Shown here: positions 1 to 7,438 of the stretch, in pieces
Layout of the letters: each line of letters opens with the position of its first letter
Position numbering within the stretch: position 1 is the stretch's first letter
From: Zygophlyctis sp. KS116
Taxonomy: Eukaryota > Fungi > Chytridiomycota
NCBI GenBank assembly: GCA_054661495.1
Contig: BAAFSQ010000406.1
Location: 1 to 7,438 of the forward strand
Direction of reading: 5' to 3'
Length of the DNA stretch: 7,438 bases
The notes under the pieces: generated by a model
Database searches by the model: none
Told to the model about the DNA's origin: nothing
Seen by the model: only the letters and a program-made list of their open reading frames with translations
Position numbers and translations under genes: made by a program

Positions 1-285
1 AGTATCCTCAAATATATTTTTACATTGATGCAACCGTTTATTTTCTTTGAATACTTGTAATATTTATACTTGTAATAATACATGATTGGTCCTTGGACTG
101 ATAAAATGTCCGAGAACCTATTTTGAGGTATTTGTCGGTTGTATTTGTCCGTAATATTAAATAAGACAATGGCAATGCAATGAGACAATCTAAAAACTTG
201 TAGAGTATCATGAATCAGCCAGACATATAGCGTCGTTTGGATCACAGATTTAGGAGTGTGCGTTCGGACAAGGAGCAAAAAAGGA

Positions 286-2272
286 ATGGAATCAGAGAGA
301 ATTATATTATCTTATCTAAAGAACAGGGGACTCAAACAGACTGAAGCGTCATTACGATCGGAAGCTAAACTACAAAAACTAACTACTGATCCAAATTTGG
401 ACTCAATACCAGAGTTTTTAATATTTTACAATGAAAAAGAATCAAACGATCCATTGGCTTTTGATAAATCTTATACGGCGCTAAGGAAATGGATTCTAGA
501 TTCCATCGATTTCTACAAGGTAACTTATTTTACTAATGTCAGTCTGAATTAGAACCTGTATTGTATCCCTTGTTTGTGCATTGTTATTTGGAATTGGTAT
601 TTAAGGGAATGAAGGATCAAGCTAGATCATTTTTAACAAATCATAAATCTGATCATTTAGATATGCATTCGCATGACATATCTAGACTTTCAGGAATAGT
701 AGAGTCGACTCATGTTTTGGAGAATGAATTAGCTCAGTCTTATAGGAATAATAGATTTGGAATACTAATGTCAAGATATCCTTTTGAACTATTGCTGGGA
801 TTTTTACAAGATCAGGGATTTATGTTGCTCTTAAGAATTGTTAACCAATATTTAAATATTCAAGTAACAAATGATAAACTCTCTGAAAGACAAGGACAAG
901 AAAAAACAGGAGCTTTAATTGGAAAAGATGAAACAATATCATCATTAGTTGCACAATTTCCAGTTTATTTGGGAAAACTTCCTCAAGATCCAGTTTTTAC
1001 AAAAGAAGTAGAAAAAGCTCTTGGAGATCCTACTATTCCTTTTTCTGCTGAACTATTGAAGAAATATCGTGCTTCTTTACAACCTGATCCTGATGCTCCA
1101 TCAACTGCATTAGCAGTTCCTTTACCTCCTCAAAAGCTTTTAGATGTAGGAAAAACAGTCATTGAACTTCAAGAAGCAAGAGAAGCAGTTTCATTAGTTC
1201 CTACGATTCTTCCGTCTGTTTGTTTTTATAGTTTTCATAATGCACATGATGGATTAAATTCACTTTCTATGTCTGATGATGGAATGATGATTTCTGGTGG
1301 ATTTGCTGATTCATATCTTAAAGTTTGGAGTCTTTCAAAGGAAAATAATATTCCTCCTAAAAATACTAAAAATGATATGAAAATTGGTATGTTTTTTAGT
1401 AAAAATGCTAAAATTACAGATGAGTCTCTTCCTGACGCCTCTGTTCGCCTTATTGGTCATTCTGGACCTGTATTTGGATCAAGTTTCGGACACGATAATC
1501 GATATCTTATTTCTTGTTCAGAAGACTCTACTGGTACTTTTTAATTCAAATTTAAATTTTAGCTCGACTATGGAGTTTAGACACTTTTAAAAATCTAGTT
1601 GTTTATAAAGGACATAATTATCCTGTTTGGGATGTAGATGTAGGACCTTATGGTGTTTATTTTGCTACAGCTTCTCATGATCGAACGGCAAGACTCTGGA
1701 GTACTGATCATATATATACATTACGAATCTTTGTCGGGCATTTATCAGATGTGAATGTATTTTCCTTTTTAAAAATGATTATTAGACTGTAAAATTCCAT
1801 CCAAATTCCAATTATATTGCAACTGGATCATATGATAAAACCTGCAGATTATGGGATATACAAAAAGGTTCAACGGTACGTATGTTTACAGGACATACTG
1901 GACCTATTTCTACATTAGCTATATCACCTGATGGTAAATCAATGGTCTCTGCAACAAATTCTGGTATATGTTTATGGGATTTGGGATCCGGTAAAAAAAT
2001 CAAGAATTTAACATTTTCTTGTTCCGCAAACTCTGAAATATATTCATTAGAGTATAGTCGAGATGGAAGACTTATAGCAGCAGGATGTAGCGATGAAGCA
2101 GTTAGAATTTGGGATGCAAAATCCTCAGAGTCTGTGTAAGATTTTTGTTAATTTTACATTTAGGACTGATGAAGTTGGGATATTCTATACCAAGAAAACT
2201 CCTGTATACAAGGTTCACTTTTCAAAAAGAAATTTATTATATGGCCTTGGAAACTTTAGAAGCAATGTATAA
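286..2272 (+). CDS. TAF5: Transcription initiation factor TFIID subunit 5 (LisH + TFIID_NTD2 + WD40 repeats). Exons 286-519, 543-1386, 1420-1533, 1563-1756, 1786-2135, 2164-2272; about 614 aa (625 aa if the 33-nt in-frame intron is retained)
   Basis: LisH-like N-terminus IILSYLKNRGLKQTE; NTD2 motif YKSELEPVLYPLFVHCYLELV restored across intron 520-542; LPSVCFYSFHN; WD40 repeats [77 protein letters not shown]; C-terminal FYTKKTPVYKVHFSKRNLL. Removing the five GT-AG introns leaves 1845 nt in one open frame. Confidence 0.96.
520..542 (+). other. 23-nt spliceosomal intron of TAF5
   Basis: GTAACT..TACTAAT..CAG; removal fuses ORFs 256-552 and 561-1544 in frame. Confidence 0.93.
1387..1419 (+). other. 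Probable 33-nt in-frame, stop-free intron of TAF5
   Basis: GTATGT donor, GCTAAA branch-like motif, TACAG acceptor; lies in the variable loop between WD repeats. It is not required to keep the frame open. Confidence 0.7.
1534..2163 (+). other. Three further TAF5 mini-introns: 1534-1562 (29 nt), 1757-1785 (29 nt), 2136-2163 (28 nt)
   Basis: Each is GT..AG, and removal restores conserved WD40 motifs ([16 protein letters not shown]) and the C-terminal FYTKKTP motif. Confidence 0.92.
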
Positions 2273-2455: not shown

Positions 2456-4341
2456 ATGCTCAACACTGATAACAAGAACTTTAAGATCATGGCATTGTCC
2501 CTCTCTGCATTGATCGCTGGAGTAGAGTCTCAAAAGACAACAAAGTCAACAAAGGCAACAAAGTCAACAAATACAACAAATACAACTTCATCTTCCATCG
2601 CTAGTTGCACTTCATCATCCCCACAATGCTGTTGGGTTGTCCGATCATGGCAACTGATGAATGGAGTTTTTACGACTGGAATTAACTCGACTGATAACAG
2701 TTGCTGCACTTTACCAATGACTGGTGTGACTTGCGATTCTACAAATACCAAAATTACAAGGATTGATTGGGTCCAAATGGGCCTCTCAGGACTTATCCCT
2801 GCAGAGATTGGAAATTTGGATAGTTTAACTTATCTGTAACTATTTTTTTAGTCTCAGATTAAAGGACTTTGTATGCCAATTCACTCACTGGAACCATCCC
2901 TGCCGAGATTGGAAATTTAAAAAAATTGAACTTCTTGTAACTATTTTCTTCAGTTAACATTATAGAAGTCTTTTGGGAAATCAACTCTCAGGACCAATTC
3001 CCTCGGTTCTTGGAAACACGCCTAATTTGCAAGAGCTGTAACTACTTTTAGATTAATTATAAAGAATTATAGCTGGAAATCAAGGTCTCAATGGAACCTT
3101 CACTCCAGCATGTGGAATGCAGCTGTAAATCCTAGCTTTTAATGATTAGATATCTCGGAGCAAGTGGCACTGGAGTGACGATATTACCCTGTGTTCCTGT
3201 AACGTGCAATTCATCTTCTCCCCAATGCTGTTGGGTTCTACGATCTTGGCAGTTGATGGGGAAATTTATTCCAGCCGGGATTTCATCTACCGATAATAGC
3301 TGCTGCTCTGTCCCATTGGTGGGTATAACTTGTGATTCCAAAAACAAGGTTACAGCCATAAACTGGCGAATGGCTGAGCTTTCTGGTTCAATTCCTCCAG
3401 AGATTGGAAATTTAAACAGTTTACAAAATCTAGCACTTGACATAAATTCACTCTCTGGTTCAATTCCTGCAGAAATTGGGAATTTAAAAAAGTTGACTGA
3501 TATGTAATTATTTCTGATTTAAAATTAGTGGCATTGGTCAAAATTTTCTCTCAGGATCCATTCCTTCAGAAATTGGAGATTTAACAAATCTGGTTCATCT
3601 GTAACTATTCTCTTCATTTAAAATTAAAGTTGGCTTGACACCAATCAACTCTCTGGACCGATTCCTTCTGAGATTGGATATATGCCGAATTTGCAATACA
3701 TGTAACTAAATTCTAGATTAATATTTTAAGTGTTATTTCTAACAATCCGGGTCTCAACGGAACATTATATACAAGATGTGGAATTGATCTGTAAGACTGT
3801 TTCTTTTAAGATCAATAGATATTCTGCCAACAGCAATGTAACATTCTGTGGTTGTGCAACTATAGGATCCCCTGCTTCAATTTTCCCACCTGCAGGAACT
3901 CCACTTTCTTGTCTTGCAACTGGTCTTGCACCTACTTTGACAAAGAGAGCTCAAGTATTTCAAAAGGACATTTCAGGTTACCGGGTCACATGCAATACTG
4001 ATCCAAATAATAATCCCTACCAGGATTGTTTGAATGCTCAAGCTGCTGTATGTAACCCATCATACATTGCTAAAAATGGACAATCGGACTGCAAAAACGC
4101 TGTTGACACAATTACTAGAAAGTTATCTTCCCTTTGGAATACCGTTCGCATTAATTGTGGACAGTGGTCCTTTGATGGCGTTATTGGTTCATTGACTTCT
4201 TCAAAATGCACCGATGCAAACAATGCCTTAAAGGACAAAGCCTACTATATTCTACCAGATGGTAGTAAAAGTTTTATTGATGACCGATTCATTGGCTCTA
4301 TGAATACAGGTCTTTGGGGAAATACAGATGTGAAAGCATAA
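2456..4341 (+). CDS. Secreted two-module LRR protein with C-terminal Cys-rich domain (LRR gene 1). Exons 2456-2835, 2865-2936, 2966-3037, 3065-3124, 3150-3503, 3529-3600, 3630-3701, 3731-3790, 3819-4341; about 554 aa
   Basis: Signal-peptide-like KIMALSLSALIAGVES; two CxxxxxxCCWVxRSWQLM..SCC..G[VI]TC caps; plant-type LRRs (LxLxxNxLSGxIPxEIGNL). Removing eight phase-2 GTAA..AG introns of 25-29 nt leaves 1665 nt open. No TM segment seen. Confidence 0.88.
2534..2587 (+). repeat. Six copies of a 9-nt coding tandem repeat (KTT KST KAT KST NTT NTT), Ser/Thr-rich linker
   Basis: aagacaaca aagtcaaca aaggcaaca aagtcaaca aatacaaca aatacaact; absent from the paralog at 5152. Confidence 0.85.
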
Positions 4342-4369: not shown

Positions 4370-4480
4370 CTATAAAACAACAAAAAAACTATAAAATCTC
4401 TAGAAAACTAAAAAAAATAACAAAATCCCAAAAGAAAACAACAAAAAAAACTATAAAACTCCATAAAACAACAAAAAAAC
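4370..4480 (+). repeat. A-rich degenerate direct repeat in the 3' flank of LRR gene 1
   Basis: Three copies of AAAACAACAAAAAAA(A)C near 4374, 4435 and 4465; two are followed by TATAAAA. Confidence 0.7.
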
Positions 4481-5151: not shown

Positions 5152-6794
5152 ATGCTCAACACTGATGACAAGAACTTTAAGATCTTGGCAGTGGCCCTTT
5201 GTGCCTTTATTTTAGGAGTAGAGTCTCAGATTTCTACTTGCACTTCAACTTCTCCTGAATGTTGTTGGGTTGTCCGATCTTGGCAGTTGATGGGTCAGAC
5301 AGTTCCAGCTGGAATCACATCTATTGATAACAGTTGTTGTACTCTTCCAATGTTTGGTGTGACTTGTGATTCTACAAACAAAGTGACAGAAATCCTTTGG
5401 GCCTGGGTAGGCCTCTCAGGTTTGATTCCTACCGAGATTGGAAAGTTGACAAGTTTGACTTTGCTGTAATTATTTTCTAAATTTAAAATTCAAGTCGTCT
5501 CGAAAGAAATCAACTCTCTGGTACAATTCCTGCTTCGATTGGAAATTTAAGAAGTTTGACTCATCTGTAATTATTTTCTAAATTTAAATTCAAGTCGTCT
5601 TTCCGGCAATCAACTCTCTGGTTCGATCCCTGTTGAAATTGGAAATTTGGTAAAATTGTTCGTTCTGTAATTATTTTCTAAATTTAAAATGATAGTCAAC
5701 TTTCTGGCAATCAACTCAATGGTTCAATTCCTGCTTCGATTGGAAATTTGATGAATTTGCAAGGGCTGTAACTATTTCTAAATTTAAAATTTAAAGTTAT
5801 CTCGGAGCGAATCAATTCCCGGGTTCGATCCCTGATTGGATTGGAGATTTGATAAATTTGACTTCGCTGTAATTATTTTCTAAATTTAAATTAAAGTGAT
5901 GTTTCAAACAATCAATTCTCAGGGTCATTTCCTGATTGGATGGGAAATTTGTCAACCTTGACTTTGCTGTAATTATTTTCTGAATTTAAAATTAATAGTG
6001 ATATTTCCTTCAACCAACTCTCAGGACCAATTCCTGCTGAAATTGGAAATTTGATAAATTTGACTGGGCTGTAATTATTTTCTAAACTTAAATGAAAGTA
6101 GTCTAGGCCAGAATGATCTTTCTGGTTCAATTCCTGCTTCGATTGGAAATTTGATAAATTTAAGAGATCTGTAATTATTTTCTAAATTTAAAATTAAAAG
6201 TGATCTTTCAATTAATCAACTCATAGGTTCAATTCCTGCTTCGATTGGACAATTGACAGGCTTAACTTCGCTGTAATTATTTTCTAAATTTAAAATGAAA
6301 GTTATCTTAACAACAATCAACTCTCAGGTTCAATTCCTTCTACGATTGGAAAGTTGATAAAATTGCAATATCTGTAATTATTTATGAATTTAAAATTAAA
6401 GTGAACTTAACAACAATCAACTCTCAGGACCAATTCCCTCTACCATTGTAAATTTGGTACAATTGCGTGAACTGTAATTATTTTCTAAATTTAAAATTAA
6501 AAGTGATCTTAACAACAATGTGAATCTCACTGGAGATTTTACTCCAAGATGTGGAATGATAGTGTAATGATTTTAAACTAATGCAGCAGTAATTCGGAAG
6601 GTACAGGGGTAACCTTGAACTCTTGCGAAAAGTTGTCAGATACCTTTTATTTGGGTATGGGAATTGGATTTGGATTGCTGGGCCTGTTAATTGTTGGAGC
6701 AGTAGTCTTCAAAATTAGAAAGGAACATTCTGCCAAGTTAAATGATAGTCAAGGAGATAAAACCGGTTCCAAGGGATATAAAATCCTAATCTGA
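5152..6794 (+). CDS. LRR receptor-like type I membrane protein (LRR gene 2). Exons 5152-5465, 5495-5566, 5595-5666, 5696-5767, 5797-5868, 5897-5968, 5999-6070, 6099-6170, 6201-6272, 6302-6373, 6402-6473, 6504-6563, 6587-6794; about 433 aa
   Basis: Signal peptide KILAVALCAFILGVES; Cys-rich N-cap; about 12 plant-type 24-aa LRRs; C-cap ..FTPRCG..GTGVTLNSC; TM helix FYLGMGIGFGLLGLLIVGAVVF (6645-6710); KIRK stop-transfer; 27-aa tail. Twelve phase-2 introns; the spliced CDS is 1302 nt and open. Confidence 0.92.
5466..6503 (+). repeat. Tandem array with about 100-102 nt period: 11 near-identical introns (consensus GTAATTATTTTCTAAATTTAAAATTAAAG) alternating with ten 72-nt LRR exons
   Basis: Introns at 5466-5494, 5567-5594, 5667-5695, 5768-5796, 5869-5896, 5969-5998, 6071-6098, 6171-6200, 6273-6301, 6374-6401 and 6474-6503. 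Confidence 0.95.
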
Positions 6795-7154: not shown

Positions 7155-7415
7155 ATGTTTCCTTCAACTCTCAAGAACCTCATATTTGCTTTAACTCTCT
7201 CTTCATTGATCTCAGGGACTGATGTAGCGGTTTCATGTAGTTCTTCTTCTCCTGAATGTTGTTGGGTTGTCCGATCATGGCAATTGATGGGGAAAACTAC
7301 TGATGTTTCTCCTACTAGTGCTACTGCTTGTTGTTTTACGGGACCTTTAACGGGACCTTTAACGGGACCTTTTACGGGACCTTTTACGGGACCTTTAATC
7401 CAACTGGAGAAGTAG
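7155..7415 (+). CDS. 5' part of a third family member (signal peptide + CCWVVRSWQLMG cap + TGP[LF] repeats); 3' end unresolved at the window edge
   Basis: Signal peptide MFPSTLKNLIFALTLSSLISG; CSSSSPECCWVVRSWQLMG..ACC. The TAG at 7413 may lie in a phase-2 intron starting GTAG at 7412, or result from a frameshift. Confidence 0.75.
   Translation: MFPSTLKNLIFALTLSSLISGTDVAVSCSSSSPECCWVVRSWQLMGKTTDVSPTSATACCFTGPLTGPLTGPFTGPFTGPLIQLEK
7338..7397 (+). repeat. Five copies of a 12-nt tandem repeat ACGGGACCTTT[A/T] encoding TGP[L/F]
   Basis: Units at 7338, 7350, 7362, 7374 and 7386. Confidence 0.95.
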
Positions 7416-7438
7416 TTTCTTTTGGAGATCCTTTCCAT

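Follow-up and report, generated by a model that had tools for sequence, protein, structure and literature searches.

A family of tandem 72-nt leucine-rich repeat exons in a fungus-like freshwater microbe, with family-wide variability on both sides of a mid-strand intron

Leucine-rich repeat (LRR) exons of a single exact length have been described in Tetrahymena, whose genome holds tens of thousands of LRR exons of exactly 90 bp, with phase-2 introns flanking more than 96% of them on either side and a 'junction' codon shared between exons (Xiong et al. 2019, PMC6564038). Those arrays were made by duplication of an exon-intron unit and were believed by the authors to have a single evolutionary origin; they traced the family to exon shuffling through unequal crossing-over (PMC6564038). 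In plants, genes of the SERK type spread their 24-residue LRRs over small conserved exons (PMC7496461), and Soanes and Talbot (2010, PMC2939053) reported fungi to be without LRR pattern-recognition receptors. Here we describe the LRR gene at positions 5152-6794 of a 7438-nt stretch of DNA from Zygophlyctis sp. KS116 (the window; 34.6% G+C), which is contig C406 in an assembly that comprises 1175 contigs and 12.7 Mb. The gene has 13 exons and probably encodes a type-I membrane protein, a plant-type LRR receptor-like or adhesin protein, the diversity of whose concave face most likely stems from selection on a binding surface. The genome is small and AT-rich with an intron class of 24-31 nt, the host is a freshwater organism, and several strong Chitin_synth_2 genes are consistent with its being fungus-like.

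The gene model was obtained by in-script splicing at GTAA..AG introns followed by translation. Excision of 12 such introns (23-30 nt) left a single open frame of 433 codons, closed by the TGA at 6792-6794 (Table 1). The encoded protein comprises, in order, a signal peptide (predicted from its hydrophobic N-terminus), a cysteine cap, 12 LRRs of 24 residues, a C-cap, a membrane helix predicted at residues 387-406 (Kyte-Doolittle 19-residue maximum 2.35, at residue 387) and a tail. Ten consecutive exons are exactly 72 nt long and all 12 introns are phase 2. The 11 introns within the LRR array (28-30 nt) each cut the L4 codon of the strand motif L1-x2-x3-L4-x5-L6-x7-x8-N9 after its second base, and each of the 10 full units has CT at the end of its exon and T at the start of the following one. 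Tandem Repeats Finder reported the same array as a 100-nt unit in 10.9 copies (5413-6510). The ten full and two edge units of the gene match the register LxxLxLxxNxL(S/T)GxIPxxLGxLxx, as do the 255 units sampled from the family. The N-cap carries Cys pairs and a ...CC..PM.GVTCDS..KVT motif resembling the plant C.W.GV.C cap; Pfam gave no family at E <= 0.1 for exon 1, LRRNT_2 included, and none for the membrane-tail exon.

The gene shares with the Tetrahymena family its tandem exons of exact length, phase-2 flanks, a common junction amino acid, a duplicated exon-intron unit that is still detectable in the nucleotides, and membership of a large, fast-evolving family (PMC6564038). It differs in that each exon is 72 nt and encodes one 24-residue plant-type LRR rather than being 90 nt long, that its introns belong to the genome's normal 24-31-nt class whereas those of Tetrahymena are 120-260 nt, that the family numbers about 90 genes rather than thousands, that no retroelement association was seen here, and that the host is fungus-like and not a ciliate (PMC6564038). 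With plant PGIP, Cf-9-type receptor-like proteins, FLS2 and SERK it has in common the 24-residue LxxLxLxxNxLSGxIPxxIGxL repeat, cysteine caps and a signal peptide, and with plant receptor-like proteins a predicted single membrane helix followed by a short tail without a kinase. Unlike the plant proteins, it has an N-cap that escapes the Pfam LRRNT_2 model and a host that is a chitin-synthase-bearing microbe; the plant-type likeness rests on the repeat consensus and on the fold of a relative, not on phylogeny. As in human NLR/NLRP3 genes, whose exon borders were also compared, in-frame removal of a module is possible, but the NLR exons are 171 bp, hold two RI-type repeats and build a cytosolic sensor, and skipping has been demonstrated in NLRP3 and not here (Hoss et al. 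2019, PMC6642158).

An earlier note on this DNA had proposed that hypervariable concave-face residues lie exactly across each splice junction of the LRR array. All 11 strand sequences that it quoted were correct (TLL/RLERN, THL/RLSGN, FVL/QLSGN, QGL/YLGAN, TSL/DVSNN, TLL/DISFN, TGL/SLGQN, RDL/DLSIN, TSL/YLNNN, QYL/ELNNN and REL/DLNNN, the slash marking the splice junction), and the hypervariable residues do straddle the junctions, 11/11 of which fall inside the L4 codon. These 11 junctions are not independent, because the position of the intron is inherited with the duplicated exon-intron unit; they are a single inherited feature copied along with that unit, not 11 separate coincidences. The note had also described the scaffold and the introns as nearly constant. 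This holds for the 11 array introns, with a mean pairwise difference of 0.08, but not for the scaffold, where x17, x18, x23 and x24 vary.

Variability was measured in the gene alone and in 255 canonical 72-nt LRR exons from 37 contigs, a sample that covers part of the family's repeats. Within the gene the three highest entropies were at x3 (2.72), x8 (2.65) and x5 (2.45), while x23 and x24 (2.32 each) and x17/x18 (1.76/1.92) were comparable to x7 (1.76) and x2 (1.57). Across the 255 repeats the five strand x positions were the five most variable (x3 3.85, x5 3.71, x7 3.38, x8 3.37 and x2 2.77 bits), the next being x23 at 2.66. The strand positions thus stand out as the top five only family-wide, not within the gene alone. 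At the nucleotide level diversity was high at both edges of the exon (0.54 over its first 13 nt, 0.43 over its last 17 nt), lower in the 42 nt between them (0.29) and lowest in the intron (0.21-0.25), so that the least variable part of the unit has the two most variable islands on either side of it. Plant resistance proteins likewise concentrate their variability on xxLxLxx.

Exon 1 has at least 89 matches in its own genome, and the family accordingly numbers about 90 genes or more. Elsewhere in the genome 179 adjacent unit pairs were found at a spacing of 96-103 nt, all with the same intron arrangement, and each of the 110 introns of a first set was GT..AG, 25-30 nt long and placed at the same position in the codon. 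Family-wide, 128/147 exons end CT and 117/147 begin with T; 163/179 introns begin GTAA, and the intron consensus GTAATTATTTTCTAAATTTAAAAT.AAAG is common to genes on many contigs. The membrane-tail exon has only four genome matches (on C406, C778, C852 and, weakly, C18), and the gene is therefore a rare anchored member of the family. As one of only three or four such members it is the natural candidate for a true surface receptor, and its product would be located at the cell surface.

The fold was examined in an AlphaFold model (28-row alignment) of a family member, P0018, a protein of 418 residues from a metatranscriptome contig that stands for a relative and not for the product of this gene. 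The model (mean pLDDT 79, and 90-99 over the LRRs) is a curved solenoid with a concave parallel beta-sheet that matches solved plant ectodomains. DSSP placed a short strand at x3-L4-x5 in five successive repeats, and the intron site therefore lies in mid-strand on the concave sheet. Among the Foldseek matches in the PDB the best was PGIP (1ogq; E 1.4e-12, probability 1.0), accompanied by a PGIP-PG complex, FLS2 (4mna), MIK2, PSKR, ERL1, SERK and BRI1; identity over the LRRs was 21-35%, a level that repeats can reach by convergence. The variable x positions, which the earlier note had placed on the concave face, are predicted by this relative's model to lie there and not off the face. This agrees with the note's background statement that in plant LRR receptors and PGIPs these x positions make up the ligand-binding surface, and by analogy the concave face here may bind a ligand. 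The P0018 model also has the cysteine-rich C-terminal domain of LRR gene 1, mostly helical (pLDDT about 65-90) and preceded by a low-confidence linker at residues 284-301.

On the question of DIVERSIFYING selection at the strand x positions, Nei-Gojobori (NG86) estimates within the gene gave a nonsynonymous proportion (pN) of 0.68 and a nonsynonymous distance (dN) of 1.74 at these codons, with a synonymous distance (dS) of 0.42 in the scaffold and 0.46 over all codons. A fixed-site codon likelihood model was then used. It combined an MG94-type matrix with branch lengths measured in synonymous units, and its three site classes were set a priori from LRR structure and not from observed variability. 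It returned a ratio omega (dN/dS) of 4.1-8.3 for x2, x3, x5, x7 and x8, of 1.5, not different from 1, for the other x positions, and of 0.27 for the scaffold. The likelihood ratio against omega = 1 at the strand positions (2dlnL 21-43) held on all the topologies used, namely two FastTree trees, a star, a tree of the strand x codons only and eight random trees. The residues at these positions also depart from the base composition of the window, with W (3.8x), Q (3.5x), D (2.7x) and N (2.1x) enriched, P, C, L, M and I reduced to 0.02-0.33x, and a profile of its own at each position; such a composition is non-neutral and is not mutational drift. Against the closest full-length paralog, on C778, which has the same 12-repeat anchored architecture, dN at the strand x positions was 1.29, dS was 0.19 in the C-terminal part and about 0.4 in the N-cap, and the introns differed by 0.14. 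This positional comparison was kept as indicative and not as proof, its repeats not being demonstrably orthologous. Repeat pairs chosen as nearest neighbours on their non-strand sites gave omega of about 5 and were dropped as proof, this choice biasing dS downward; 66/73 of the 'nearest' pairs joined repeats of different genes. When middle pairs were instead selected without bias through the repeats beside them, no more than 2-4 pairs remained, and introns were rejected as a neutral reference, being conserved family-wide.

Several observations weigh against reading these ratios, and the model as a whole, at face value. Repeat distances within genes equal those between genes, with a synonymous proportion (pS) of 0.26-0.36 in the scaffold and intron differences of 0.11-0.15, even between genes whose N-caps are saturated (dS 1.3-2.5). 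Because scaffold and intron distances stay the same across such genes, the synonymous reference has been homogenised or constrained; omega may therefore be inflated, and a value above 1 is not clean proof. The strand x positions are themselves near saturation (pN 0.62-0.69), which leaves their rates poorly measured, and repeats cannot be shown to correspond by position between paralogs. The structure is that of a relative of the 5152-6794 protein, and splicing of the gene itself is deduced from the family, its 100% matches among RNA contigs being unspliced. The earlier note's claim of diversifying selection is thus partly supported: omega is estimated above 1, but against a synonymous reference that is not clean. 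Should whole units turn over together, the scaffold dS would be a proper clock and omega would truly exceed 1; under patchy conversion, or with a constrained scaffold, it is inflated.

The alternative that survives best, though still an unlikely one, takes the x positions to be unconstrained and saturated without any selection for diversity, the scaffold codons and introns being kept alike around them by constraint at the nucleotide level or by conversion. Purifying selection on splice signals or exon definition could act in this way, as could continual short-tract gene conversion that stalls at mismatched islands. The failure of scaffold pS and intron distance to rise with gene age fits this account, as does a pN at random level in the strand positions. 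Introns also differ less (0.08-0.14) than synonymous sites do in the exons around them (0.3-0.4), and synonymous codon choice is position-specific and kept family-wide (L11 CTC, L6 CTT, L1/L22 TTG, G13 GGT and G20 GGA). However, the residue composition of the islands is far from what free drift would give in AT-rich DNA, Trp being 3.8-fold up and Pro, Cys and Leu nearly excluded; conversion tracts carrying intron and scaffold would carry the 6-9-nt islands as well, so that keeping the islands different needs selection; and a generic splicing constraint is not explanatory, the introns of the TAF5-like gene in the same window lacking the family consensus. What has to be accounted for is that near-random islands of 6-9 nt with a biased residue composition persist between homogenised stretches, and selection for different binding faces is probably the best explanation of that.

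We therefore favour selection on the binding surface, by a route that would run as follows. The array would have grown by tandem duplication of a 100-nt unit made up of a 72-nt exon and an intron of about 29 nt, each copy inheriting the phase-2 intron within the L4 codon, in the middle of a concave-face beta-strand. The residues beside that codon, x2 and x3 on one side and x5, x7 and x8 on the other, would be the ligand-contacting positions, and most of the diversity in the family is found there. Point changes would supply variants among which selection favours different binding surfaces, as would short tracts of recombination or conversion in the germline, by which sub-exon pieces would pass between repeats and between genes. 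That hypervariable residues lie across a splice junction follows only from the site of the ancestral intron; a large gene family is here evolving fast in the ordinary way, and splicing has no special part in it.

A patchwork of short tracts is visible in the DNA. The two half-strands are almost unlinked, across the intron (about 32 nt apart; r 0.054, 3/23 identical pairs) and across the 54-nt exon scaffold (r 0.036, 10/52 identical pairs) alike. In the C778 paralog (reverse strand, about 830-1450) a tract of about 215 nt occurs twice at 100% identity, 402 nt apart. Each copy includes two repeats and parts of introns, and the identity starts and stops within introns; this is a very recent conversion or duplication. 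In units whose first 13 nt are identical, the upstream exon ends, x17/x18 and x2/x3 differ. Hybrid strands therefore do arise at the DNA level, through ordinary recombination or conversion over lengths smaller than an exon.

An improbable extension of this makes the mid-strand intron the preferred joint of germline recombination, with the homogenised 29-nt introns allowing half-strands to reassort above chance between repeats and genes and the intron's placement itself under selection. Both limits of the identical C778 tract lie inside introns, units on C1086 and C683 share an identical intron and downstream half-strand while their upstream exon ends differ, and coupling across the intron is no stronger than across the scaffold. 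The numbers are tiny, however, the pairs are non-independent and both couplings are weak; breakpoints are resolvable only where sites vary, and so appear too often near exon ends; some tracts stop within scaffolds, at x17/x18 and x23/x24; and there is more homology in the conserved 42 nt of scaffold than in the intron. The present tracts cannot establish introns as preferred breakpoints. That a near-identical intron in about 90 genes serves as a recombination joint for germline, or even somatic, reassortment of half-strands is very doubtful. If it were true, the recombination joint would underlie a combinatorial recognition repertoire in a fungus-like microbe, built on exon-intron cassettes, of which the assembly of lamprey VLR genes would be the functional analogue.

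The earlier note had further suggested that each new exon pairing would create a new hybrid strand. The geometry permits this, since any joint between 72-nt exons with phase-2 flanks keeps both the frame and the LRR register and fuses x2 and x3 of one repeat to x5, x7 and x8 of another; as a splicing mechanism it found no supporting RNA joint. Four lake or estuary metatranscriptomes holding family sequences were used. Their contigs contained no exact exon-end joint between non-neighbouring exons of the 5152-6794 gene, at a low coverage that rare isoforms could escape. The apparent exon skips in RNA alignments were rejected, all of them containing foreign letters between scaffold matches and thus coming from paralogs. 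In RNA contigs matching at 90-99%, 14-22 foreign letters stand between scaffold matches, just enough for the x3..x8 codons once the intron is removed, and family transcripts are therefore spliced neighbour to neighbour. One RNA contig has a 72-nt period, and family transcripts and proteins show regular consecutive repeats; the contigs of P0001, P0017 and P0018 are barely longer than their open reading frames, with continuous LRR frames of 72-nt period, for which reason P0018 is taken to come from spliced mRNA. Only two contigs, both from a lake-water RNA library, were 100% identical to the gene (6402-6585 and 6585-6727); they are unspliced across introns 11 and 12 and may represent DNA or pre-mRNA. 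The same two contigs place the organism itself in the lake-water sample.

Because the introns are phase 2 and start GTAA, a retained intron reads CTG TAA, an immediate in-frame stop. Short introns are spliced by intron definition, and this class favours retention over skipping; removal of about 130 nt in one step is unlikely in a genome with 24-31-nt introns. Splicing here is probably constitutive, joining neighbouring exons only. Alternative splicing of the 72-nt phase-2 exons, by skipping or alternative pairing, into isoforms with hybrid strands and combinatorial diversity is hardly credible: the near-identical introns and the precedent of NLRP3, in whose modular LRR exons exon 5 is skipped (PMC6642158), speak for it, but the regular order of repeats in transcripts and proteins, the paralogous origin of the 'skips', the missing joint in the four libraries and the tight intron class with its stop on retention all speak against it. 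Re-pairing of half-strands by splicing is thus unsupported, and only RNA evidence would justify retaining the idea.

The locus would add a second, independent array of exact-length phase-2 LRR exons to the known one, and the architecture would be a recurrent route to large, fast-changing binding repertoires. In the present case each 72-nt exon holds a single plant-type repeat, and the host is a freshwater microbe with chitin synthases. The family is also a compact system in which to study how a binding face stays diverse amid homogenised surroundings.

Table 1. Genes of the window and exon-intron structure of LRR gene 2.
Feature	Position	Strand	Remarks
TAF5-like gene	about 256-2270	+	Pfam: TFIID_NTD2 and WD40
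LRR gene 1	2456-4341	+	
LRR gene 2	5152-6794	+	gene under study; 13 exons
LRR gene 3, start only	7155-7438	+	contig end reached
Exon 1	5152-5465	+	start codon, signal peptide, cysteine-rich N-cap (CTSTSPECCWVVRSWQLMG...NSCC...GVTCDS), LRR1; ends CT of split Leu; open reading frame, spliced translation
Intron 1	5466-5494	+	29 nt, GTAA..AG, phase 2
Exon 2	5495-5566	+	72 nt, one LRR (x5..x3 register)
Intron 2	5567-5594	+	28 nt, phase 2
Exon 3	5595-5666	+	72 nt, one LRR
Intron 3	5667-5695	+	29 nt, phase 2
Exon 4	5696-5767	+	72 nt, one LRR; first 13 nt identical to two units on contig C136
Intron 4	5768-5796	+	29 nt, phase 2
Exon 5	5797-5868	+	72 nt, one LRR
Intron 5	5869-5896	+	28 nt, phase 2
Exon 6	5897-5968	+	72 nt, one LRR
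Intron 6	5969-5998	+	30 nt, phase 2
Exon 7	5999-6070	+	72 nt, one LRR
Intron 7	6071-6098	+	28 nt, phase 2
Exon 8	6099-6170	+	72 nt, one LRR
Intron 8	6171-6200	+	30 nt, phase 2
Exon 9	6201-6272	+	72 nt, one LRR
Intron 9	6273-6301	+	29 nt, phase 2
Exon 10	6302-6373	+	72 nt, one LRR; first 13 nt identical to two units on contig C701
Intron 10	6374-6401	+	28 nt, phase 2
Exon 11	6402-6473	+	72 nt, one LRR
Intron 11	6474-6503	+	30 nt, phase 2
Exon 12	6504-6563	+	60 nt; final irregular LRR and start of C-cap (DLNNNVNLTGDFTPRCGMIV)
Intron 12	6564-6586	+	23 nt, GTAA..AG, phase 2; sole choice keeping the frame open to TGA; C778 paralog aligns through
Exon 13	6587-6794	+	second C-cap cysteine, membrane helix, 27-residue basic tail, TGA

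The window holds four genes, one TAF5-like and three related LRR genes. The TAF5-like gene encodes a LisH-like start, TFIID_NTD2 and WD40 blades, and its four introns of about 28-33 nt belong to the genome's ordinary class. LRR gene 1 encodes two successive modules of N-cap and LRRs followed by a cysteine-rich C-terminal domain of about 173 residues, which has 40 genome matches; no Pfam family was found for this domain, and the gene is without a membrane helix. Directly after its signal peptide a 9/18-nt repeat (2533-2586) encodes a Lys/Thr-rich stretch, and an A-rich 29-nt tandem repeat of 3.7 copies (4370-4480) occupies the intergenic DNA that follows the gene. In the third LRR gene a CCWVVRSWQLMG cap motif is followed by a 12-nt tandem repeat of 5.4 copies (7334-7398), which encodes TGPL/TGPF units in place of the usual second half of the cap.

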